In this document: piece after piece, positions 2,222 through 56,434 of the stretch
Numbering within the stretch: position 1 is the stretch's first letter
Layout of the letters: every line of letters begins with the position of its first letter
Source of the DNA: Orbicella franksi
Taxonomy: Eukaryota
Direction: 5' to 3'
DNA: 64,000 nucleotides
Assembly (NCBI GenBank): GCA_964199315.1
Contig: OZ116708.1
Span: forward strand, 21,452,001-21,516,000
Notes under the pieces: model-generated
Told to the model about the DNA's origin: nothing
The model's input: the letters and a program-made list of their open reading frames with translations, nothing else
Database searches by the model: none
Position numbers and translations under genes: made by a program

Positions 2222-2673
2222 AACTTTGTTTAATTCAGTATTTGCTTTTAAATTGTAATTATCTAATTAAGACACCTACAATTAACTTATCACAACTTTG
2301 CTAAAGCTATTAGTTGCTATTCCATATCGACAAGCTCACTTAAACATGTTTAGTCACGTTAAAACAAATTGAAAGAGTTGTCATTTAAAAAAACTGAAAT
2401 AAAATCTTACTTTAAGTTTCTCGACCAAACAATGAAAATAAATCTTTGTAGTGCGACTTACATGTAAAATGTATTGATCTGTTTGCTTGACTTCAAAGAT
2501 TTTATGAGCAAAACTGTAAACTGAACTCGATGATCATATAACGCCTAATTTCTACTAATTTTAATCCCTCAAGAACCACTTGTTCAAGTGAAGTGAAGTG
2601 AAAGACTTTATTTAATGAGGGTGACCCGTGACAGTAACTTAAAGAGAAAGACCGAAAAAAAAAGCTGGTTAAA

Positions 2674-2708
2674 GAAGAAAAGCCGGCAGGGCAAGCCGGC
2701 TTTTCTTC
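2674..2708 (-). other. Stem-loop in the proximal 3' UTR of BRICHOS gene 1
   Basis: Perfect 14-bp inverted repeat GAAGAAAAGCCGGC-agggcaa-GCCGGCTTTTCTTC, ~25 nt after the stop codon. Homologs lie at ~15464-15504 and ~28207-28247. Confidence 0.8.
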
Positions 2709-2732
2709 CCTCTGCCATTGTTTTTTTCTTTT

Positions 2733-5636
2733 TTACCCGCAAACTTTTAAGCATTGTATTACAGTAACTAACCAGCAGCGATACTTAGAATTGACAATCC
2801 TACAAATGCTCTTGAGAACAGGTTTACACTTCAGCGGGCAATCTGGTAAGAGACCTAGAACAACAATCAAAAGCTCAGTTAATTCGGAATGAGAGGGGAA
2901 AGGTAGTGAGTACATCACTGAATGAACTTGTATTTTTTTCTGTTGCATATTCTTTTCGTATTGTGCTCAAAATCTGCTGCAATCATTTCTGCTTTCTGCT
3001 CATTTAGTCAATTGATGCACAAAAACCGAAGACAAGTCTGACCCTTATGCGTATATGCGAGACCGATAACAATCGCCTTTTCCTAATCTATGAAAGAGAT
3101 AGATATCAAGTTCAGTGGGGATTTATGAGGCGTGCAATGTGAGGCGATGGTGAAAAACAGGGCGAACTCCAAAAGAAAATACAGATCAGATGTGAGGTCA
3201 GTGCGTTAAACGACAACGGCTACCATAGCTACTAATTTTTAAATTAATGTCAACCTAATGATGCACAGCATACTGATACCGGCTTTAAAAACTATGTAAT
3301 CTTAGCGTCGCTGATAATTTCCTTAACAGAGAAGGAAGATAGAGTTCAAAAACATGTACGCGTGTTTCACTTACCTCTTGCGGCTATTTTGCCCGTGGAT
3401 AAGCTTCTAGGTGCCCTATCTACCTTGACAACAAGATAAATGGGTAGCTCTGCACACAGATTCTTCATTTCGTCAATCAGATTGCCACGTGCATTGTCAT
3501 CAAGAGTCCCCACAGCCTCCAATTTCACTACAGGTGGACTTTTGTTCATCGTAAATCCCGCGTCGTTCTCCTAGTGGGATTAAATTAAAAAACTGACCCT
3601 CTGAACTACTGTACAGTCATGATAGTTATTACTGAAATTTCTAAAGACGACGCGGAACGTTTTGTGCAGAATCTCTAATCTGTAGGCATGACAAAGGAAA
3701 CAAGACTAGGTCTAGTTTAAATACACTATACGTATAAGGAAGCTGTTTTGCCAGTTCTATATTAAACCATGCTACTGTGTTAATACTATTGCACAACAGT
3801 GGATGTTTGCCTCATTGCCAAAGCTTCTGTTTAGAAATTGTTTCCAGTTCTCCCGCTAATATATTTTACCATGCGCGTTGCAGTAGATGTTTTTTTTGTT
3901 TGTTTGTTTGTTTGTTTTGTTCGATGATGTAAGCGGGATAAGCAATAACAAGTATTTCAGTTAATTTTCAATCATATTTCGAGTACCTTCAGTGTTAACA
4001 ATTCAGCACAACGAAACATGGGATACAAACTTACCAGAAGGCGCGCCAAGTCGGCCGGTTTAGGAACATTTTCAGTTGATGGACTCAGATAGCACGATTT
4101 GGCCTCTGGCATACGGATCATCATAAAATTCTGCAAAGTTCGAATGCATTAGTTATGTGCAAGTGCTGTCTGTATAAACGTAACGCTCCTATACTAAGAT
4201 AGCATGTCGCACACTCAGGTCATATGAATTTTGCCTTGAAGTTGAAGTAAAGTTATTTATCAAGGACCCATTTTGCACACCACTCAAAATGGCTTTAACT
4301 CCACATTTACTAGTCAACTGCTTCTTCCTTTACATGTAGTGTATACGAAGAGAACTCCTTGCTAAGCGAGGTGTTGTGCCTTGGATGTCGCTGAAAATAA
4401 TCTTTGGAAATAAGAACGAATGATAATAATAATAATCAATGAATCATATCTTTATACTAGCCCCGTACCCTCCCCTCTCCCTGAACAGGTCTTCCTACTT
4501 CTGATATTCGCCTCGACCCCGATAGCAAGTTATAAATTAGTGAATCGAACATGCAGTGCTCTAAAGTCACTAACCTTTTTAAAGTCAATGACCACGTCTG
4601 CCTCTTCTTTATCAGGCGAAATCTTTGGCACATGGAAAGTCTCTGTTTCCTTCTTTGTGTCAATTTCAACCTCTCCCTCTTCCTCTTTTCCATCTTCTGT
4701 CTTCAATTTTAATCTGTATTTCTTCACCGGATCACTAGCAGGTGAATCCTGCAAAGCCTGAAGAACGAAAAGGTATACCTGCATTTCAACTCATCTGATT
4801 ATACTGAGAGAGGATCAGGATAGCTTGGGTCCGAATTTGGTCGTCTTGAAAGTTCCATGAAAGTAAGCAATATTAGAAAGCAGGGAATTTCCTCTCAACT
4901 AATATTACACTGACACACATCGCTAAGCAAGTTTTAATCTGTAAGTCATGTGCTCTTGGATACGAACAAATACATCAAATGAAAACGCATGCGGCAGAGA
5001 AAGCAAATATCTGTTGTTATACTTCAACCGTTACCTTTTCCTCAGGTGAACCGCATTTACAGATTGACGAGGCAGACACAGCGACAATCGACAGAGCAAG
5101 GCACAAAATGAACAATTTGAAACCCTAAAGAGGAAAATTGGGTAAATGAACTTTTTTAAGTATCCTCTCTTATCAACTGAATTAGCGACTAAACGTTTTA
5201 CAGCGAGGATCCCGCGGCATGCAGCACAAGTGTGACCTCTTTTGGTCAATTCCCATTGTTTCGTGCAGATCATCCAATTAGAAGACAGGTTGCTTGAAGA
5301 AAAACAATTCAAAACCGCAAGTGATCGTGCGGGAAAGATTAAGTTCAAACTTTACAGTTTTAATTGTTAAATCGTACTCAAACCTAATTTGCAGCTCCAA
5401 AATGTGAAATGTTTACCACAAAATCAAATAAACAGGCATCTGCTTGACAGCCTATTTGCCCGGCAACAACTTAAAACTCAAGAAGTGATGAGAAATAATT
5501 TCTAGCGCCAGTATAAATGCATTCTTGCGTACTTTAACTCGAAAATACGACAAAATTTCTGGGTATATTTTGTTGTCTTGCTTTTGTGTATGGATCTAGC
5601 AGCAGACAAATGGCAAAATGAAAATAGACTTACCAT
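2733..5636 (-). CDS. Secreted BRICHOS-domain precursor with a C-terminal 6-Cys cationic beta-hairpin peptide (gene 1, 229 aa)
   Basis: Coding exons 5636-5634 (ATG), 5124-5035, 4757-4575, 4130-4035, 3570-3375 and 2854-2733. All introns are GT-AG with phases 0,0,0,0,1 and the frame is open throughout. Protein: MGFKLFILCLALSIVAVSA (signal-like) ... VVIDFKKNFMMIRMPEAKSCYL ... MKNLCAELPIYLV (BRICHOS Asp plus two Cys) ... RAPRSLSTGKIAAR-GLLPDCPLKCKPVLKSICRIVNSKYRCWLVTVIQCLKVCG*. Confidence 0.88.
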
Positions 5637-5720
5637 TTTTCTTTTGTGAAAAAGCGTCAAGTCTTCTTTCCTCTTGTAGCTGATGCAAAGTAGTATGGAT
5701 GCAGGTTCATATGAGCGAAC

Positions 5721-5814
5721 CCTTTTTATATCATCTGAAGGTTGTACAATGCCACCTCACTCCGGCTTAATCGGCTGATATCTGAAAATGTTACACCTAA
5801 ATTTGACCTGACCT
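5721..5814 (-). promoter_or_regulatory. Core promoter of BRICHOS gene 1 (TATA box and AGGTCAGGTCA motif)
   Basis: TATAAAAAGG at 5730-5721, ~90 nt upstream of the ATG, and AGGTCAGGTCA at 5814-5804. The same TATA is at 18443-18452 and 31186-31195, and in the inverted paralog at 9469-9477. Confidence 0.6.
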
Positions 5815-12938: not shown

Positions 12939-15552
12939 GATTCTGATTAATTTATTCATTAAACCTGGATTAAACAATTATCTACTACTTCCCCTACTAA
13001 GTAATGTTTTTGTCCAAGAGTGTTCGGTCGTCTTGAAGAAGGTTTTTTGACGAAATAGAAGACGAGGGGAAGACGCGGGGGACTAGAAAGGCGTACATTT
13101 TTGCCCAAGAAATCGAGAGCCTGGGTGCGAGTTTGTCGGGCACCCTGAAGTCGGCCATTTTGGCTTCATGTGATTTTCTTTCGTAAATATGTTGTTTTTT
13201 GCCTATCGGCTTTTGCTCACACGTGGATGAAAGCTGGTAGAGGTATTTATGACTGTGGTCATGTATCGGTCACAACAACGCGGTCGGCGAGGTCAAAGAA
13301 TTGATACGAGAGACCCTGTAAGACAAAGTCAGAAAGTGGGATCGTGTTAACTTAGCATATGGGGCAAATTAAGCTCGTAGCTTTTTTTCTTGGCAAGAGA
13401 ATTTGATGGTTTCCACTCGCTTTCTCTCCTTGTGGAGTCCAAGGTAAGCTTAAGTTCTTGTTGAGTTTTAGTTTCATTGTTTCTTTATTGTTTTATTTTG
13501 TAATAATAATAATAGTAATAATAAAGATCTTTCAGCAGGGAGCCCACTTCACATACATGTGGTTTTCAGTGGGGCCCTGCAAAAATAAAATTGCAAAAGC
13601 TAAAGAAATAGTAGATTAAAAATAATAATAAAATTTAACCATTGTACTAATAGAAATATAGAAAACAGAAAAAAAAATGGTAATTAAAAATTAAAAATTA
13701 AGAAATACCCCTAATTCGACGGAAGTTCGAAATTTGTACGTAGTAAGCTTATTTTAAAATACTTCAAGTAAGAAATTCGATTTGCCTCATCGTTTCGTTC
13801 TGTTGTCGTTCACACTACATTTCTTTTGTATTCCATGCAGTTTGACCAGAGTGGAAATTTCTTCACAGATGGTATACGCGTCAACCTACATGTACGATCG
13901 AGTAAATACGAGCTATGTTGAAATATTTTAGTGATGGACGGACAAATTAAAGCAATTAAGTCCAAGAGACTGTGTAGATCTATTTTTTACAAGGGAGATA
14001 TATGCTGTCCAATTGCATCAGGATGGGGGTGCTCGTCGTAACAGATAAATTGTGAGGGGCGGGTGAGGGGTGGAGGGGTAGTGTTTACCTGAATCATACC
14101 AGGATCATTGACTTTCACACCCGTATGAGTTCATCCTAGTTCCCTCCCCGGGGGTACTTTGATATAAAAGGGACGTGGGTGTCCTTCGGAAATTTTTGAA
14201 AAGAATTCCCAAGAGGTACCAAGATCCAATTTTGTGGGCGTGGGTTGAAATTTTTTCTTTCCTAAGAGGTACCAAATATTCTTAAACAACACATTAACTG
14301 ACGATTGCTTCGAATACCCTCTATTCGTAAAGTTGATTATCAAATATTTCCTCATATTTTGGGGGGCTTAATACCCTGCTCCTGCTGTGGACCTTTTGAA
14401 GCTGAACACCATAAGAGGTTGCGTGAATGAATTACATAGTTCAACTTGAATTAAGAAGTTTCCGCGTAGCCGGCTACAAAGAACTTAATTTGAGTGGCAG
14501 GGTACTCTGCAGTTGAACCGAAAGGTATAATAATATGAAATATCGTGGGATACTAAATGGTATAGAACTCGCAGGCGTTGCGTAACTAGTTGCGTTCAGA
14601 GCTTGTAAGAAGTATAATTCCCCGCAATCTGCTTTTGGTTTTCTGTCTGTTTCCACTCAAAACTTTTTACAGAGAAGAAAAAAGATACACATTATTTTAC
14701 AACTAAGCAAGAAATGATCTCGAAGAAAGGTCTGCGTGCACACCGAACAAGTTTGGCGACGAGCAGTGATGTAGGGAAGGGGTAGAATCATACTGGAGAG
14801 AGGAGGGGGGAGGCCCTTTCTTCTGGGATTCTACAATACCAAGAGAAACTTAAAGGACTTGTTTTGCTCAGTTTATAGTTGGTCACTTCTGGGTTTTAGG
14901 GAACACCGAATTAACCTTTATGAACCTACAGAAGGAGACGGCAGGAAAAAATGGCTCCGAAACAGTCCTATATATAGACTCGATATATAGTGTAACACTT
15001 GGACACATTAGACATAGTAAGCAAAAAAAAAGCAATCGATTTGATGTGGCACAAAAAGAGGCTTTATTAACTTTGTTTAATTCAGTATTGGCTTTTAAAT
15101 GGTAACTATCTAATTAAGACACTGACATACAATTAATTTATCACAACTTTGCTAAAGCTATTAGTTGCTATTGCATATCGACAAGCTCACTTAAACAAGT
15201 TTAGTCACGTTGAAATAATTTGAAAGAGTTGTCATTATAGAAAACTGAAATAAAATCTTACTTTTTTAAACCAAAAAATTAAAACAAATCTTTGTAGCGC
15301 GACTTAAAATGTATTGATCTGTTTGCTTGACTCCAAAGTTTTTATTAATAGCAAAACTGTAAACTGAACTCGATCATATAACGCCTAATTTCTACTGATT
15401 TTAGTCACTCAAAATCCACTTGGTTAAAAAAGAAAAGCCGAAAAAAAAAAAAACAAGCTGGTTAAAGAAGAAAAGCCGGCTTGCCCTGCCAGCTTTTCTT
15501 CTTTCTGCCCTTTCTTTTTTTAACCCGGCATAAATTAGGGGGGCCCCCGCAC

Positions 15553-18358
15553 TTAATCGCATTCGTTTGTGCATATTGTTTCGGTAACGGTATACTTGAT
15601 TATCCAAAGTATAACAACAGTTTTCGTAACAGTTCTACACACTTCCTTACAGTGTCGTCTGATACCTAGAACAACAATCAAAAGCTCAGTTAATTCGGAA
15701 TGAGAGGGCAAAGTGAGCGCATAGCTGATTGAACTTGTATTTTTTCGAATTGTGCTCAAAATCTGCTGCAATCATTTCTGCTCTTTCTGCTCATTTAGTC
15801 GATTGATGCACAAAAACAGAAGAAAACACTGACCCTTCTGCGTATATGTGAGACCGATGACAATCGCCTTTTCCTAATCTATGAAAGAGATAGATATCAA
15901 GTGCAGCGGGGATTTATGAGGCGTGCAATGTGAGGCGATGGTGAAAAACAGCACGAAATCCAAAAGAAAATACAAATCAGACATGAGGTCAACGGCTACC
16001 ATAGCTATTAATTTTTAAATTAATGTCAATTTAATGATGCACAGCATACTGATGCCGGCTTTAAAAACTATGTAATCTTAGCGTCGCTGATAATTTCCTT
16101 AACAGAGAAGGAAGATAGAGTTGAAAAAAATGTACGCGTGTTTCACTTACGTTTTGCGGCTGCTTTGCCCGTGGTTAAGCTTCTCGGTTCCCTATCTACC
16201 TTGGCAACAAGATAAATGGGTAGCTCTGCACACAGATCCTTCATTTCGTCAATCAGATTGCCACGTGCATTGTCATCAAGAGTCCCCACAGCCTCCAATT
16301 TCACTACAGGTGGACTTTTGTTCATCGTAAATCCCGCGTCGTTGTCCTAGTGGGATTAAATTAACAAACTGACCCTCTGAACTACTGTACAGTCATGATA
16401 GTTACTACTGAAATTTCTAAAGACGACGCGGAACGTTTTGTGCAGAATCTCTAATCTGTAGGCATGACAAAGGAAGCAAGACTAGATCTAGTTTAAATAC
16501 ACTATACATATAAGGAAGCTGTTTTGCCAGTTCTCCATTAAACCATGCTACTGTGTTAATACTATTGCACAACAGTGGATGTTTGCCTCATTGCCAAAGC
16601 TTCTGTTTAGAAATTGTTTCCAGTTCTCCCGCTAATATATTTTACCACGCGCGTTGCCTAGAGATATTTTCTTCGATGATGTAAGAAGGATAAGTAATAA
16701 CAGGTATTTCAGTTAATTTTCAATCTTATTTTGAGTACCTTGAATTTCAACAATTGATCACAATGAAACATGGGATATAAACTTACCAGAAGGCGCGCCA
16801 AGTCGGCCGGTTTAGGAACATTTTCAGTTGATAGACTGAGATAGCACGATTTGGCCTCTGGCATACGGATCATCATAAAATTCTGCAAAGTTCGAATACA
16901 TTAGTTATTTGAAAGCGTTGTATAAAGGTAACGCTTCTACACTAAGATAACATGTCACACAGGTCATATGAATTTTGCCTTGAAATTGACCCATTTTGCA
17001 CACTACTCAAAATGGCCTTAACCCATAAGCTAGTTAACTGCTTGTTCCTTTACACGTAGTGTACACGTCTTATTTCAATGTATATACGAAGAGAACTCCT
17101 TGCTAAGCGAAATGTTGTGCCTTGGATATCGCCGAAAATCTTTGGAAGTAATAACGAATGAATGAATCATATCTTTATACTAGCCTCGTACCCTCCCCTC
17201 TCTCTGAACAGGTCTTCCTACTTCTGATATTCGCCTCGACCTCGATAGCAAGTTATAAATTAGTGAATCGAACATGCAGTGCTCTAAAGTCACTAACCTT
17301 TTTAAAGTCAATGACCACGTCTGCCTCTTCTTTATCAGGCGAAGTCTTTGGCACATGGAAAGTCTCTGTTTCCTTCTTTGTGTCAATTTCAACCTCTTCC
17401 TCTTCCTCTTTTCCATCTTCTGTCTTCAATTTTAATCTGTATTTCTTCACCGGATCACTAGCAGGTGAATCCTGCAAAGCCTGAAGAACGAAAAGGTATA
17501 CCTGCATTTCAACTCATCTGATTATACTGAGAGAGGATCAGGATAGCTTGGGTCCGAATTTGGTCGTCTTGAAAGTTCCATGAAAGTAAGCAATATTAGA
17601 AAGCAGGGAATTTCCTCTCAACTAATATTACACTGACACACATCGCTAAGCAAGTTTTAATCTGTAAGTCATGTGCTCTTGGATACGAACAAATACATCA
17701 AATGAAAACGCATGCGGCAGAGAAAGCAAATATCTGTTGTTATACTTCAACCGTTACCTTTTCCTCAGGTGAACCGCATTTGCAGATTGACGAGGCAGAC
17801 ACAGCGACAATCGACAGAGCAAGGCACAAAATGAACAATTTGAAACCCTAAAGAGGAAAATTAGGTAAATGAACTTTTTAAGTATCCTCTCTTATCAACT
17901 GAATTAGCGACTAAACGTTTTACAGCGAGGATCCCGCGGCATGCAGCACAAGTGTGACCTCTTTTGGTCAATTCCCATTGTTTCGTGCAGATCATCCAAT
18001 TAGAAGACAGGTTGCTTGAAGAAAAACAATTCAAAACCGCAAGTGATCGTGCGGGAAAGATTAAGTTCAAACTTTACAGTTTTAATTGTTAAATCGTACT
18101 CAAACCTAATTTGCAGCTCCAAAATGTGAAATGTTTACCACAAAATCAAATAAACAGGCATCTGCTTGACAGCCTATTTGCCCGGCAACAACTTAAAACT
18201 CAAGAAGTGATGAGAAATAATTTCTAGCGCCAGTATAAATGCATTCTTGCGTACTTTAACTCGAAAATACGACAAAATTTCTGGGTATATTTTGTTGTCT
18301 TGCTTTTGTGTATGGATCTAGCAGCAGACAAATGGCAAAATGAAAATAGACTTACCAT
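15553..18358 (-). CDS. Secreted BRICHOS-domain precursor with a C-terminal 4-Cys Thr/Val/Ile-rich beta-hairpin peptide (gene 2, 226 aa)
   Basis: Coding exons 18358-18356, 17847-17758, 17480-17298, 16882-16787, 16346-16151 and 15665-15553; GT-AG with the same phases as gene 1. C-terminus: REPRSLTTGKAAAKRIRR-HCKEVCRTVTKTVVILWIIKYTVTETICTNECD*. Confidence 0.88.
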
Positions 18359-25569: not shown

Positions 25570-25700
25570 NNNNNNNNNNNNNNNNNNNNNNNNNNNNNNN
25601 NNNNNNNNNNNNNNNNNNNNNNNNNNNNNNNNNNNNNNNNNNNNNNNNNNNNNNNNNNNNNNNNNNNNNNNNNNNNNNNNNNNNNNNNNNNNNNNNNNNT
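25570..25700. other. Assembly gap or masked run (131 N)
   Basis: Replaces the 75-nt CACT-microsatellite segment seen at 12879-12953. Confidence 0.95.
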
Positions 25701-28295: not shown

Positions 28296-31101
28296 TTAAT
28301 CGCATTCGTTTGTGCATATTGTTTCGGTAACGGTATACTTGATTATCCAAAGTATAACAACAGTTTTCGTAACAGTTCTACACACTTCCTTACAGTGTCG
28401 TCTGATACCTAGAACAACAATCAAAAGCTCAGTTAATTCGGAATGAGAGGGCAAAGTGAGCGCATAGCTGATTGAACTTGTATTTTTTCGAATTGTGCTC
28501 AAAATCTGCTGCAATCATTTCTGCTCTTTCTGCTCATTTAGTCGATTGATGCACAAAAACAGAAGAAAACACTGACCCTTCTGCGTATATGTGAGACCGA
28601 TGACAATCGCCTTTTCCTAATCTATGAAAGAGATAGATATCAAGTGCAGCGGGGATTTATGAGGCGTGCAATGTGAGGCGATGGTGAAAAACAGGACGAA
28701 ATCCAAAAGAAAATACAAATCAGACATGAGGTCAACGGCTACCATAGCTATTAATTTTTAAATTAATGTCAATTTAATGATGCACAGCATACTGATGCCG
28801 GCTTTAAAAACTATGTAATCTTAGCGTCGCTGATAATTTCCTTAACAGAGAAGGAAGATAGAGTTGAAAAAAATGTACGCGTGTTTCACTTACGTTTTGC
28901 GGCTGCTTTGCCCGTGGTTAAGCTTCTCGGTTCCCTATCTACCTTGGCAACAAGATAAATGGGTAGCTCTGCACACAGATCCTTCATTTCGTCAATCAGA
29001 TTGCCACGTGCATTGTCATCAAGAGTCCCCACAGCCTCCAATTTCACTACAGGTGGACTTTTGTTCATCGTAAATCCCGCGTCGTTGTCCTAGTGGGATT
29101 AAATTAACAAACTGACCCTCTGAACTACTGTACAGTCATGATAGTTACTACTGAAATTTCTAAAGACGACGCGGAACGTTTTGTGCAGAATCTCTAATCT
29201 GTAGGCATGACAAAGGAAGCAAGACTAGATCTAGTTTAAATACACTATACATATAAGGAAGCTGTTTTGCCAGTTCTACATTAAACCATGCTACTGTGTT
29301 AATACTATTGCACAACAGTGGATGTTTGCCTCATGGCCAAAGCTTCTGTTTAGAAATTGTTTCCAGTTCTCCCGCTAATATATTTTACCACGCGCGTTGC
29401 CTAGAGATATTTTCTTCGATGATGTAAGAAGGATAAGTAATAACAGGTATTTCAGTTAATTTTCAATCTTATTTTGAGTACCTTGAATTTCAACAATTGA
29501 TCACAATGAAACATGGGATATAAACTTACCAGAAGGCGCGCCAAGTCGGCCGGTTTAGGAACATTTTCAGTTGATAGACTGAGATAGCACGATTTGGCCT
29601 CTGGCATACGGATCATCATAAAATTCTGCAAAGTTCGAATACATTAGTTATTTGAAAGCGTTGTATAAAGGTAACGCTTCTACACTAAGATAACATGTCA
29701 CACAGGTCATATGAATTTTGCCTTGAAATTGACCCATTTTGCACACTACTCAAAATGGCCTTAACCCATAAGCTAGTTAACTGCTTGTTCCTTTACACGT
29801 AGTGTACACGTCTTATTTCAATGTATATACGAAGAGAACTCCTTGCTAAGCGAAATGTTGTGCCTTGGATATCGCCGAAAATCTTTGGAAGTAATAACGA
29901 ATGAATGAATCATATCTTTATACTAGCCTCGTACCCTCCCCTTTCTCTGAACAGGTCTTCCTACTTCTGATATTCGCCTCGACCTCGATAGCAAGTTATA
30001 AATTAGTGAATCGAACATGCAGTGCTCTAAAGTCACTAACCTTTTTAAAGTCAATGACCACGTCTGCCTCTTCTTTATCAGGCGAAGTCTTTGGCACATG
30101 GAAAGTCTCTGTTTCCTTCTTTGTGTCAATTTCAACCTCTTCCTCTTCCTCTTTTCCATCTTCTGTCTTCAATTTTAATCTGTATTTCTTCACCGGATCA
30201 CTAGCAGGTGAATCCTGCAAAGCCTGAAGAACGAAAAGGTATACCTGCATTTCAACTCATCTGATTATACTGAGAGAGGATCAGGATAGCTTGGGTCCGA
30301 ATTTGGTCGTCTTGAAAGTTCCATGAAAGTAAGCAATATTAGAAAGCAGGGAATTTCCTCTCAACTAATATTACACTGACACACATCGCTAAGCAAGTTT
30401 TAATCTGTAAGTCATGTGCTCTTGGATACGAACAAATACATCAAATGAAAACGCATGCGGCAGAGAAAGCAAATATCTGTTGTTATACTTCAACCGTTAC
30501 CTTTTCCTCAGGTGAACCGCATTTGCAGATTGACGAGGCAGACACAGCGACAATCGACAGAGCAAGGCACAAAATGAACAATTTGAAACCCTAAAGAGGA
30601 AAATTAGGTAAATGAACTTTTTAAGTATCCTCTCTTATCAACTGAATTAGCGACTAAACGTTTTACAGCGAGGATCCCGCGGCATGCAGCACAAGTGTGA
30701 CCTCTTTTGGTCAATTCCCATTGTTTCGTGCAGATCATCCAATTAGAAGACAGGTTGCTTGAAGAAAAACAATTCAAAACCGCAAGTGATCGTGCGGGAA
30801 AGATTAAGTTCAAACTTTACAGTTTTAATTGTTAAATCGTACTCAAACCTAATTTGCAGCTCCAAAATGTGAAATGTTTACCACAAAATCAAATAAACAG
30901 GCATCTGCTTGACAGCCTATTTGCCCGGCAACAACTTAAAACTCAAGAAGTGATGAGAAATAATTTCTAGCGCCAGTATAAATGCATTCTTGCGTACTTT
31001 AACTCGAAAATACGACAAAATTTCTGGGTATATTTTGTTGTCTTGCTTTTGTGTATGGATCTAGCAGCAGACAAATGGCAAAATGAAAATAGACTTACCA
31101 T
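28296..31101 (-). CDS. Secreted BRICHOS-domain precursor (gene 3), same C-terminal peptide as gene 2
   Basis: Coding exons 31101-31099, 30590-30501, 30223-30041, 29625-29530, 29089-28894 and 28408-28296. Splice sites and frame are intact. Confidence 0.85.
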
Positions 31102-49984: not shown

Positions 49985-51076
49985 TTATTGCAGAGGTGTT
50001 TCTTTCCATCCGCCGTTCGGATCTGCCTGCCTTGCCGGTTCTTGTTCATCGTTAAAGGTCCGATTTCCTTGTCCTACATCAATATTACCGTTGAATCCAA
50101 TCTGTCTTTGTCCAAATATTTTTCTGTCAATTTTCTCGGCTTGTGCAGCAGTTTTTCTTGACAATACCTGAATGAAAGCTGTGCGAAAATTTCTTATTCT
50201 AACAGTGTAAATTAACGGATTGAAAAATGAATTCAGTACTGGCAATAAAGTAAAAATATAAAGAACAATAAGCCTTACATTGGGAGAGATTCTCTTCTTA
50301 AAAGAGAACAGAATAACGAGACATATATTCAACGGGACATAACATAGTAAAATAACCAGAGTTACGATGACAGTGGCGTAAAAAGCTTTCTTGTTTCTGA
50401 GTATCTTTTCCTTGGCTTCTGAAGAAACTTGGTTGGCAGCAATTTGTTTTTCGTTGCGACGGACTTCCTTGTATACAGAGACGTTAAAGTAAACGGGAAG
50501 AATTAAAAGAAAAATTTTAGAAACTGCTAGTATGGTCTTAGATAGTTTTGTTGCGTTCAAGAAGTTATTGGTGGGAATTATGATGGCTGTAACCCAGGCC
50601 AGAGCAGAGGCCATGATGATGCGACCTTCAGTGACCTTGGTCTCGTATGTGAAGGGGTGTTTAATCGCAACAAAACGCTCTGCGCTTATCAAAACCAAAT
50701 GATGGAGTGAAGCCAGTAAACATTCCAACGTGACAGCTTTTGACACCTCGGTTATAGTACAAAACATGTTGTGTTCACCTTTGAGAAGCAAACTCTCCCT
50801 GGCAATATGAAGAGGTTGAAGAACTATTCCAACAACAAGGTCAGTTGTGGATAAACAAGCGAGTGCTATGTTGGATTTGGAGCGAAGCTGTCGTTTGGTT
50901 TTCACTGACACCATCACCAGGATGTTGAGCAAAATGATGAGAGGACAGGTGAGAGTGTTCACGGTGATTCTAACCGTGAACACAGCGCGTACATGATGCG
51001 AAATATTTGCAGGATTTAGAGGAAAAGAGGAGAAACCACAACTAGATAAGGTGGTGTTGGATGTGGTGTCATTCAT
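49985..51076 (-). CDS. Intronless rhodopsin-like (class A) GPCR, 363 aa, cnidarian-type orphan receptor
   Basis: Seven hydrophobic segments; LN.LV in TM1, LACLSTTDL in TM2, SAERF (DRY variant), LCYVP in TM6, NSFFNPLIY in TM7; N-terminal N-glycosylation sequons. Confidence 0.92.
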   Translation of the reverse strand: MNDTTSNTTLSSCGFSSFPLNPANISHHVRAVFTVRITVNTLTCPLIILLNILVMVSVKTKRQLRSKSNIALACLSTTDLVVGIVLQPLHIARESLLLKGEHNMFCTITEVSKAVTLECLLASLHHLVLISAERFVAIKHPFTYETKVTEGRIIMASALAWVTAIIIPTNNFLNATKLSKTILAVSKIFLLILPVYFNVSVYKEVRRNEKQIAANQVSSEAKEKILRNKKAFYATVIVTLVILLCYVPLNICLVILFSFKKRISPNVRLIVLYIFTLLPVLNSFFNPLIYTVRIRNFRTAFIQVLSRKTAAQAEKIDRKIFGQRQIGFNGNIDVGQGNRTFNDEQEPARQADPNGGWKETPLQ

Positions 51077-55492: not shown

Positions 55493-56434
55493 CTACGCTG
55501 ATTTACAGCAGTTTAATTGTTTGATCATGTCCTTGGCTGCTTTTCGCACACTTCTGATCCTCCAGCAGTAAAGAATCGGGTTTAGAGTCGAATTTAGGTA
55601 GACAAACGTTATTGCAATGTGTCGAGCAATTTCAATTTGGCTAGCAGTTGTTTGGTTAGATGTCCCGAGCATCACCACAACTGAAATTGGAACATAACAT
55701 ATGATTAATGACACCTGTACCCATATTGCGCTAGAAACTGACTTCTTGTATCGTACTATATTCAGAGAGCCTGCTTTTCCCTTGGGTTGTCCTTGTGTTA
55801 ATGGGTACACTGGAAACCGATGTTGTCGAAGCTTGACAAAAATCGTAGAGTAGGAGAAGACGGAGGTTATAACAGAAAATAATGTAAGCGCAAAGCCTAC
55901 AGTAAAGGCAATACTAGCATTTAAAAAATATATCGATCCAACTGAAATCCCAATCAACCAAAAGCACGTGATAACTGCACGAGCTCGTGGTAATGTTACA
56001 ACTTGTCTGTATCTCAGTCCAGATAACAGGGCTAGGAGTCTATCCACGCTTATTGCGCTGGGTGTAAAGATCGATATCTGACACAAAACAAAGCTTAAAG
56101 CGGTCCATAGTTTACCGATGTAGTAAATAAGTTGCCAGTTCATTCCAGTTGTTACAGGAGACAAAAGGAAAACGGCGTAGAGTGGCTGCGTAATAACGCC
56201 AACACAAAGATCAGTGATCGTCAGACATTGCAACAAAAGTTTCGTTGGAGGATGAAGGGCAGTCTCTTTATGAAGAGCAACAAGAATTAGAGTATTGCCC
56301 AGGGATGCAGTGATGGACAGCAAAATGTTTAAGGTTGAAAGAAATACTCCTATTCCTGTTAGTATTGAGGATTTGCTTGCTTCGTTAACGTTCAGCTCGA
56401 TTGTGGTGTTTTCGGTTACAGTGAAGTTCGCCAT
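55493..56434 (-). CDS. Intronless class A GPCR, 313 aa (cnidarian melanocortin/adenosine-receptor-like orphan group)
   Basis: GNTLIL in TM1, LTITDLCVG in TM2, SVDRLLAL, ICYVP, NSTLNPILYCWR; no Cys at the top of TM3; intact ORF. Confidence 0.92.
   Translation of the reverse strand: MANFTVTENTTIELNVNEASKSSILTGIGVFLSTLNILLSITASLGNTLILVALHKETALHPPTKLLLQCLTITDLCVGVITQPLYAVFLLSPVTTGMNWQLIYYIGKLWTALSFVLCQISIFTPSAISVDRLLALLSGLRYRQVVTLPRARAVITCFWLIGISVGSIYFLNASIAFTVGFALTLFSVITSVFSYSTIFVKLRQHRFPVYPLTQGQPKGKAGSLNIVRYKKSVSSAIWVQVSLIICYVPISVVVMLGTSNQTTASQIEIARHIAITFVYLNSTLNPILYCWRIRSVRKAAKDMIKQLNCCKSA

Follow-up and report, generated by a model that had tools for sequence, protein, structure and literature searches.

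A scleractinian BRICHOS precursor gene of Orbicella franksi with a candidate three-disulfide hairpin host-defense peptide at its C-terminus

BRICHOS precursors of polychaetes release proven antimicrobial peptides (AMPs) (PMC10745061, PMC7761999), and the BRICHOS domain of these precursors is thought to act as a chaperone for the aggregation-prone tail (PMC10745061, PMC7761999, PMC6265681). We analyzed a stretch of 64,000 nucleotides from the coral Orbicella franksi (contig OZ116708.1, positions 21,452,001 to 21,516,000; hereafter, the window), in which gene 1, encoded on the minus strand, shares the organization of polychaete arenicins, alvinellacin, capitellacin, nicomicins, and HfBRI, i.e., a signal peptide, an acidic BRICHOS pro-region, and a cationic, hypervariable C-terminus. 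The twin C-x3-C rungs of arenicin-3 and capitellacin are also present in the gene 1 tail. The polychaete peptides comprise 17–25 residues with one or two disulfides, whereas the tail of this cnidarian gene comprises 40 residues with three rungs, and the dibasic site that defines processing of the polychaete precursors is absent from gene 1. Gene 1 represents the arenicin type of BRICHOS system in a cnidarian host, its tail being much longer and predicted to carry three disulfides, and we consider it fairly probable that it encodes a secreted BRICHOS precursor releasing a cationic hairpin host-defense peptide.

BRICHOS-linked peptides of corals have so far only been predicted, and in a single study (PMC12960093). 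In that 2026 proteomic study of Pocillopora acuta larvae, two BRICHOS proteins were detected only in settlers, and predicted AMPs were given in a supplementary figure; PaBRI-AMP1 and PaBRI-AMP2 were predicted from Pocillopora CAH3125467 and XP_058945786, with two disulfides assumed (PMC12960093). Their precursors contain a coral BRICHOS domain and Cys-rich tails of about 39 residues after KR, and their pro-region is clearly homologous to that of gene 1, but CAH3125467 contains five Cys residues in a spacing other than that of gene 1. The 3-7-n-7-3 Cys scaffold, the C-terminal Gly rule, the spread of the family, and the missed exons described below are absent from that study. The three characterized AMPs of stony corals (damicornin, AmAMP1, and digitiferin) are all of the ShK type and have no BRICHOS pro-domain (PMC12496222). 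These peptides are secreted, Cys-rich, and cationic like the gene 1 product, but differ from it in fold and gene family, and no Pfam match to the ShK domain was found on the gene 1 tail. Damicornin has 40 residues, contains six Cys residues, and is amidated.

The register of the gene 1 tail is also comparable to that of tachyplesin, polyphemusin, protegrin, gomesin, and theta-defensin, cationic peptides with mirror-symmetric Cys residues forming nested, non-hydrogen-bonded pairs. C-terminal amidation is common among such ladder beta-hairpin AMPs (PMC13001179). However, these peptides comprise 16–18 residues, carry three disulfides only in the 18-residue cyclic theta-defensins, and derive from unrelated precursors; the likeness of gene 1 to them is one of mechanism, and ancestry is not shared.

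The 40-residue tail contains Cys residues at positions 6, 10, 18, 27, 35, and 39, giving the spacing 3-7-8-7-3, and the positions of each of the three mirror pairs sum to 45. Seven Lys or Arg residues stand against one Asp (net charge +6), and Gly is the final residue before the TAA stop codon. This mirror spacing, charge composition, and terminal Gly had been reported in an earlier note made from the DNA letters, and the minus-strand translation confirmed them; the coordinates given there (2733–2854) are exactly the coding part of exon 6 with its stop codon, and the description of a cationic peptide longer than arenicin or tachyplesin also held, the tail exceeding both by far. With six Cys residues placed at random in 40 positions, a mirror-symmetric arrangement is expected in 0.5% of cases, and a symmetric arrangement with all Cys residues on one strand face in 0.1%.

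The same scaffold, C-x3-C-x7-C-x(n)-C-x7-C-x3-C, where n ranges from 4 to 13, was found in 12 other scleractinian BRICHOS tails. The central spacing was 4 in P0031, P0035, L004, and L005 (a second locus of the same genome, C11:25.19 Mb), 5 in P0024, 6 in P0030, 10 in P0036, 12 in P0015, P0016, and P0017, and 13 in P0021 and P0028, compared with 8 in gene 1. Its recurrence across genera excluded chance as the explanation of the Cys symmetry. In an alignment of eleven six-Cys tails, the six Cys residues were the sole invariant columns, and the BLAST alignments of gene 1 with its relatives ended at about residue 183, the tails not being alignable as sequence. BRICHOS-linked tails were present in each of the two major clades of corals, among others in Pocillopora, Stylophora, Oculina, Porites, and the present genome. 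By these comparisons, the gene 1 tail belongs to a Scleractinia-wide family in which the scaffold is the only conserved feature of the tail. Six further tails contained eight Cys residues spaced 3-3-3-n-3-3-3, a ladder that differs from the six-Cys one only by a further rung inserted halfway along each x7 segment. A search with the 71-residue genomic open reading frame (ORF) containing the gene 1 tail found no homologous database protein and no tail of this type elsewhere, an ESM Atlas search for look-alikes of the tail returned nothing usable, and the peptide sequence was not found in a literature search. One match of the tail profile, L007, was a low-complexity SVCL repeat and was discarded as false.

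From its N-terminus, the precursor runs through a segment resembling a signal peptide and an acidic region to a domain bearing two conserved Cys residues, and it ends with the tail. By inspection, the signal peptide comprises MGFK, a hydrophobic core, and VSA|SS, and the N-terminus is conserved in the relatives. The BRICHOS membership of gene 1 was established by BLAST against these relatives, together with Pfam run on single exons. Exon 4 alone reached PF04089 with an E-value of 0.037, below the cut-off, because the domain is split across three exons, and a genome-wide scan with PF04089, exon by exon, gave three sub-threshold matches, none at the gene 1 locus, so that this model is not strong enough for a domain divided among exons. 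The Membrane_bind, LcrV, and SAMD1_WH matches of single exons were rejected as weak chance matches. A protein search with exon 5 led to P0010, a protein of Stylophora with a PF04089 score of 78.5 bits; residues 42–172 of gene 1 aligned with both BRICHOS repeats of P0010 at 40–45% identity with E-values of about 1e-30 (best, 45% and 3e-30). The other matches of this search were mostly short ORFs running from exon 5 into the intron, and one of them, P0004, was an unrelated bacterial protein.

We assembled about 40 related scleractinian proteins (from Pocillopora, Stylophora, Oculina, Porites, and Desmophyllum) together with Logan and JGI records, and nearly all of these proteins carried a precomputed PF04089 domain. 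Residues 1–183 of gene 1 were 70–72% identical in BLAST to P0030, P0031, and the Oculina patagonica proteins P0035–P0037, all five of which carry this domain, and C104 and C162 of gene 1 aligned with the invariant BRICHOS Cys residues of the family. The best PDB match of the AlphaFold2 model of P0036 was human Bri2 BRICHOS, followed by proSP-C BRICHOS (probability 0.99 for both). It is almost certain from these data that the exon 6 product is the genuine tail of a BRICHOS precursor.

Hand annotation of gene 1 gave six coding exons with a coding sequence of 690 nt for 229 residues, and all five introns were of the GT..AG type. The coding part of exon 1 (5634..5636, minus strand, as for all gene 1 features) is the ATG start codon only, with the donor GTAAGT immediately after it and the 5' untranslated region (UTR) continuing upstream; the start MGFKLFIL also occurs in database relatives. 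Exon 2 (5035..5124) encodes the signal peptide, with a hydrophobic core and probable cleavage after VSA, and a conserved CKC motif, and exon 3 (4575..4757) encodes the acidic pro-region and the beginning of BRICHOS (45% identity to the P0010 repeats). The BRICHOS core with the first conserved Cys (KSCY) lies in exon 4 (4035..4130), the exon that reached PF04089 by itself. Exon 5 (3375..3570) encodes the remaining half of BRICHOS, in which the second conserved Cys lies (NLCAELPIY), followed by a short linker that includes R-A-P-R; it closes with ...GKIAAR and the opening base of a Gly codon. The coding part of exon 6 (2733..2854) supplies the last two bases of this Gly1, tail residues 2–40, and the TAA stop codon at 2733–2735. 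The Gly1 codon is thus split by intron 5 (G at 3375 and GT at 2854–2853), and the 40 tail residues correspond to the translation of 2736–2855. A candidate polyadenylation signal, AATAAA, recognized from sequence only, lies in the 3' UTR at 2607..2612, and RNA contigs extend to about 2586.

Contigs of public polyA RNA-seq runs were aligned to positions 2560–5760 of the window. All five predicted joints were present in RNA contigs of run X3, each as CT..AC on the plus strand, and one joint was also present in run X5. An RNA contig reaching 129 letters into exon 6 covered the joint of exons 5 and 6 (2852/3373, cut +2); the upstream joints in X3 included 4756/5034 and 5123/5633 (cut +1). The exon 5/6 joint in polyA RNA demonstrated that exon 6 is transcribed and spliced onto the upstream exons as predicted. 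In a search of the 497-Mb genome, the tail type of gene 1 was single-copy. The 3' UTR contains a short segment (2586–2642) that is a dispersed repeat, judging from its very high depth of contigs and the many loose ends there, and a 54-bp indel (2586/2641) was seen in two RNA runs. Just past the gene 1 stop codon, at about 2680–2710, lies a G+C-rich inverted repeat (aaaagccggc...gccggctttt), a diverged version of which sits at the same place after the stop codon of the paralogous gene 2.

In the pathway that we propose, the BRICHOS domain would hold the aggregation-prone tail in solution on its way through the secretory pathway, and the tail would fold into a long hairpin with three nested disulfides (C6–C39, C10–C35, and C18–C27), preferably a beta-hairpin with its turn at N22-S23. 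The terminal Gly would be converted to an amide, and the peptide, once cut from the pro-domain, would act as a membrane-active host-defense peptide in mucus or epithelium.

AlphaFold2 prediction of the gene 1 tail alone with an 11-row tail alignment gave a beta-hairpin with strands 8–21 and 24–37 and a turn at N22-S23 (mean predicted score in the local distance difference test [pLDDT], 89). The predicted turn coincided with the center of the Cys symmetry, which would make the three Cys pairs cross-strand neighbors on one face in non-hydrogen-bonded positions. A Foldseek search of the PDB with the tail model found nothing better than an E-value of 1.8, as expected for a bare hairpin. On the face opposite to the Cys residues, strand 1 carries K9, K11, K15, and R19, strand 2 is almost wholly hydrophobic, and the Cys face is hydrophobic as well; the modeled hairpin is therefore asymmetric by strand and not amphipathic by face. 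The amphipathic beta-hairpin suggested in the earlier note was thus retained as to the hairpin and its register, which suits nested pairs, but not as to facial amphipathicity, and the tail of one relative was predicted to be helical. We regard a nested three-disulfide hairpin as very probable, and the pairing C1–C6, C2–C5, and C3–C4 is expected under either fold.

Several observations weighed against a released beta-hairpin defense peptide. The five AlphaFold2 tail models reached pLDDT values of 89, 88, 69, 65, and 58, and only two of them were confident. The tail of P0036, modeled within its precursor, formed a helical hairpin (helices 193–205 and 210–229; pLDDT 66–80), and the arm hydrophobic moment at 100 degrees surpassed the 180-degree value in most members, the two values being similar for gene 1. 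The nearly pure hydrophobic strand 2 could lead to aggregation of the peptide or point to another role. Gene 1 reads K-I-A-A-R|G before the tail in place of a dibasic site, with Ala at P2 and the nearest upstream basic residue at P5 rather than P4 or P6. Finally, the RNA support consisted of low-depth contigs, some of them unspliced.

The alternative that survived best retains the precursor and the nested disulfides, but takes the tail to be a cystine-stapled alpha-helical hairpin. Plant alpha-hairpinins and the twin-CX3C small Tim proteins combine C-x3-C...C-x3-C with nested disulfides in this manner, although only two disulfides are present in them, their precursors are unrelated, and their arms contain neither Pro nor Gly. 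Besides the P0036 model and the arm moments, the family consensus CxxVCxxVxRRxCxxV is consistent with this alternative, since it shows a helix-like hydrophobic periodicity in which C, V, or I at positions 0, 3, 4, 7, 11, 12, and 15 form the stripe of an amphipathic helix, and proSP-C, the classical BRICHOS client, is a Val-rich helix. However, the gene 1 tail alone was predicted as a beta-hairpin with its turn at the Cys symmetry center, whereas the helical loop of P0036 (206–209) lies off the symmetry center of its Cys residues (210.5), so that C205 would not pair with C216. Pro and Gly occur within the arms (P12 in gene 1; CSFGC, CRSGC, CPIGC, and NSVGSWA in relatives), where V, I, T, and Y are abundant; the mean Chou-Fasman values over the arms were 1.09–1.20 for P(beta) and 0.82–0.97 for P(alpha), beta being higher in every member. 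The eight-Cys relatives would place four rungs at every fourth residue, with C-x4-C at the center, an arrangement like that of tachyplesin and capitellacin, and a C-x-R-V-C motif, which also occurs in capitellacin and alvinellacin, argues in the same direction. The Pocillopora-type loops contain an NG turn between F and W. Because of the off-center helical loop, the Pro and Gly residues and the composition of the arms, the eight-Cys ladder, and the NG-turn loops, the models and sequences favor the beta fold to a reasonable degree, and we consider the helical hairpin unlikely, though not negligible.

As to function, an antimicrobial role of the gene 1 tail is supported by analogy: every invertebrate precursor with BRICHOS and a cationic tail that has been tested functionally gave an AMP (PMC10745061, PMC7761999). 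By this analogy, the balance tips slightly toward an antimicrobial gene 1 tail. The tail might instead be a BRICHOS client with a non-antimicrobial task, such as a toxin or venom component or a peptide for settlement, adhesion, or the skeleton. BRICHOS proteins of corals have been detected at the protein level solely in larvae at settlement, where they were confined to settlers (PMC12960093), and cnidarian Cys-rich cationic peptides are often toxins, the known coral AMPs all being ShK-related (PMC12496222); the very hydrophobic C-terminal strand would also suit such a task. The uniform outcome of the tested precursors and the net charge of +6 speak for the defense peptide, and we judge a non-antimicrobial client to be rather improbable.

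The evolution of the tail exon bears on both possibilities. Between gene 1 and gene 2 (2560–3374 versus 15380–16150, minus strand), intron 5 was 94% identical, whereas identity was 54.5% in the coding part of exon 6 and 61% in the 3' UTR, and the break in identity fell exactly at the splice acceptor of exon 6. The tail exon has therefore undergone either very fast evolution or replacement. Such a hypervariable exon beside conserved introns is compatible with host-pathogen conflict, but a toxin could show it as well. A near-identical allele, L002, differed from gene 1 at two positions of exon 6, both protein-changing (S23F and L36S), compared with one difference in the 520-nt intron, and its Cys residues were intact; we count this, too, as a mark of an arms race. 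These tail variants lie at 2788 and 2749 of the window; L36S was also found in RNA contigs of runs X2 and X3, whereas S23F was found in L002.

Release of the tail is a weak point of the proposed pathway. In the paralogous genes 2 and 3, the split codon (C plus GT) encodes Arg and yields the junction A-A-A-K-R|. Directly before the tail, KR or RR, often as R-x-K-R, stands in each of the 16 database relatives whose tails are Cys-rich. As gene 1 has no such dibasic site, convertase cleavage at the junction is doubtful, and release of the 40-mer and its N-terminus are uncertain. The P1 Arg, invariant in the family, is kept, and R-A-P-R, ten residues upstream of the tail, could allow release of a 50-residue form. 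This tetrapeptide (3406–3417, minus strand; residues 176–179), which corresponds to R-E-P-R in genes 2 and 3, contains R-X-X-R, the minimal convertase motif; the closest relatives read DRAPT at this place and lack the motif. The linker after the BRICHOS domain is much shorter in the three genes of the window than in the relatives. Release exactly as a 40-mer starting at Gly is possible, but we would not expect it. Proprotein-convertase P domains were found in the genome.

The C-terminal end showed a clearer pattern. Gly was C-terminal in nine of 17 Cys-rich tails, gene 1 included, while one tail ended in GR and a genomic eight-Cys tail in RG. Against a Gly background of 7%, nine of 17 corresponds to P of about 6e-7 if the tails are independent, which they are only in part. 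The C-terminal Gly appears to be a family trait that supports amidation, and the gene 1 tail is probably amidated. Numerous exons in the genome belong to the copper type II monooxygenase family, which includes PHM; the family also includes DBH-like enzymes, and this finding is permissive only.

The junction also raises the possibility that gene 1 is a paralog that has lost processing, with its tail remaining on the BRICHOS pro-domain or with the gene drifting toward loss of function. R-G replaces K-R, and the gene 1 tail is the only Cys-rich tail examined without K/R-R before it; in addition, the rest of the genome contains nothing related to the tail, its words recur in no database protein, and both allelic changes in exon 6 alter the protein. 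On the other side, the frame is intact and none of the six Cys residues has been lost from the window sequence, allele L002, or the RNA contigs of runs labeled with three organisms, the transcript is correctly spliced and present in RNA of polyA libraries, the family-invariant P1 Arg is retained, and R-A-P-R could free the 50-residue form. We therefore regard loss of processing as unlikely, somewhat more so than either of the preceding alternatives. A chance ORF in non-coding DNA with coincidental Cys symmetry, as might be imagined for one among 56 mechanical ORFs, was refuted by the RNA joints to the BRICHOS exons and the conservation of the scaffold in 12 relatives (P of random symmetry, 0.005), and its probability is negligible.

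The window contains two paralogs of gene 1 on the minus strand, gene 2 (15553–17847) and gene 3 (28296–30590), both encoding a tail with four Cys residues spaced 3-21-3, a charge of about +2, and a K-R site. The two genes are offset by 12743 bp and are 100% identical over at least 15.5–19 kb, and a run of N (25570–25699) lies between them; the identity together with the intervening assembly gap means that the duplication could be an assembly artifact. At least two further clusters of BRICHOS-plus-tail genes were found in the same genome. L005 (G000:C11:25194861-25195721) has a six-Cys tail with n = 4 that is nearly identical to that of the JGI protein P0031, and L006 (G000:C9:14479965-14480069) has an eight-Cys tail ending in RG, with more BRICHOS exons at C9:14.50-14.73 Mb. 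A more remote relative of the window genes, on a contig with about 81% DNA identity (L003:887-1309; ENA ERZ27245421), encodes a Cys-free tail of about 24 residues, whose alternation of hydrophobic and polar residues around a central W-P resembles a disulfide-free hairpin. The window also carries two intronless ORFs on the minus strand (49985–51076 and 55493–56434) that encode 363 and 313 residues with matches to PF00001, the rhodopsin-family seven-transmembrane receptors (E about 1e-25).

Seven deposited models (P0026, P0037, P0038, P0040, P0042, P0039, and P0029) from Oculina, Porites, and Desmophyllum stop shortly after KR, typically with KRK or KRE. These ends correspond to read-through of the donor C|GTAAGTGA, as in the present window, and judging from this correspondence, the coral models ending in this manner probably lack a small mature-peptide exon. 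AMP screens based on such proteomes would miss the family.

Our data lead us to propose, tentatively, that reef-building corals possess a large unrecognized class of BRICHOS-chaperoned hairpins of 35–60 residues, with three or four disulfides, rungs at a fixed spacing of four residues, frequent amidation, and tail exons that evolve much faster than the introns beside them and are often missed by annotation. Gene 1 would be a lineage-specific member of this class, with non-dibasic release and a salt-tolerant, membrane-active defense function, and its product, a triple-stapled beta-hairpin, would exceed those of all known AMPs in length. If the BRICHOS tails are AMPs, corals would have a second, unrelated, and much more diverse arsenal beside the ShK-type peptides, which would be relevant to coral disease and to the way corals control their microbiome. 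Because the Cys ladder is fixed while loops and arms are free, the tails would also constitute a natural library of long stapled hairpins for the design of peptide antibiotics.

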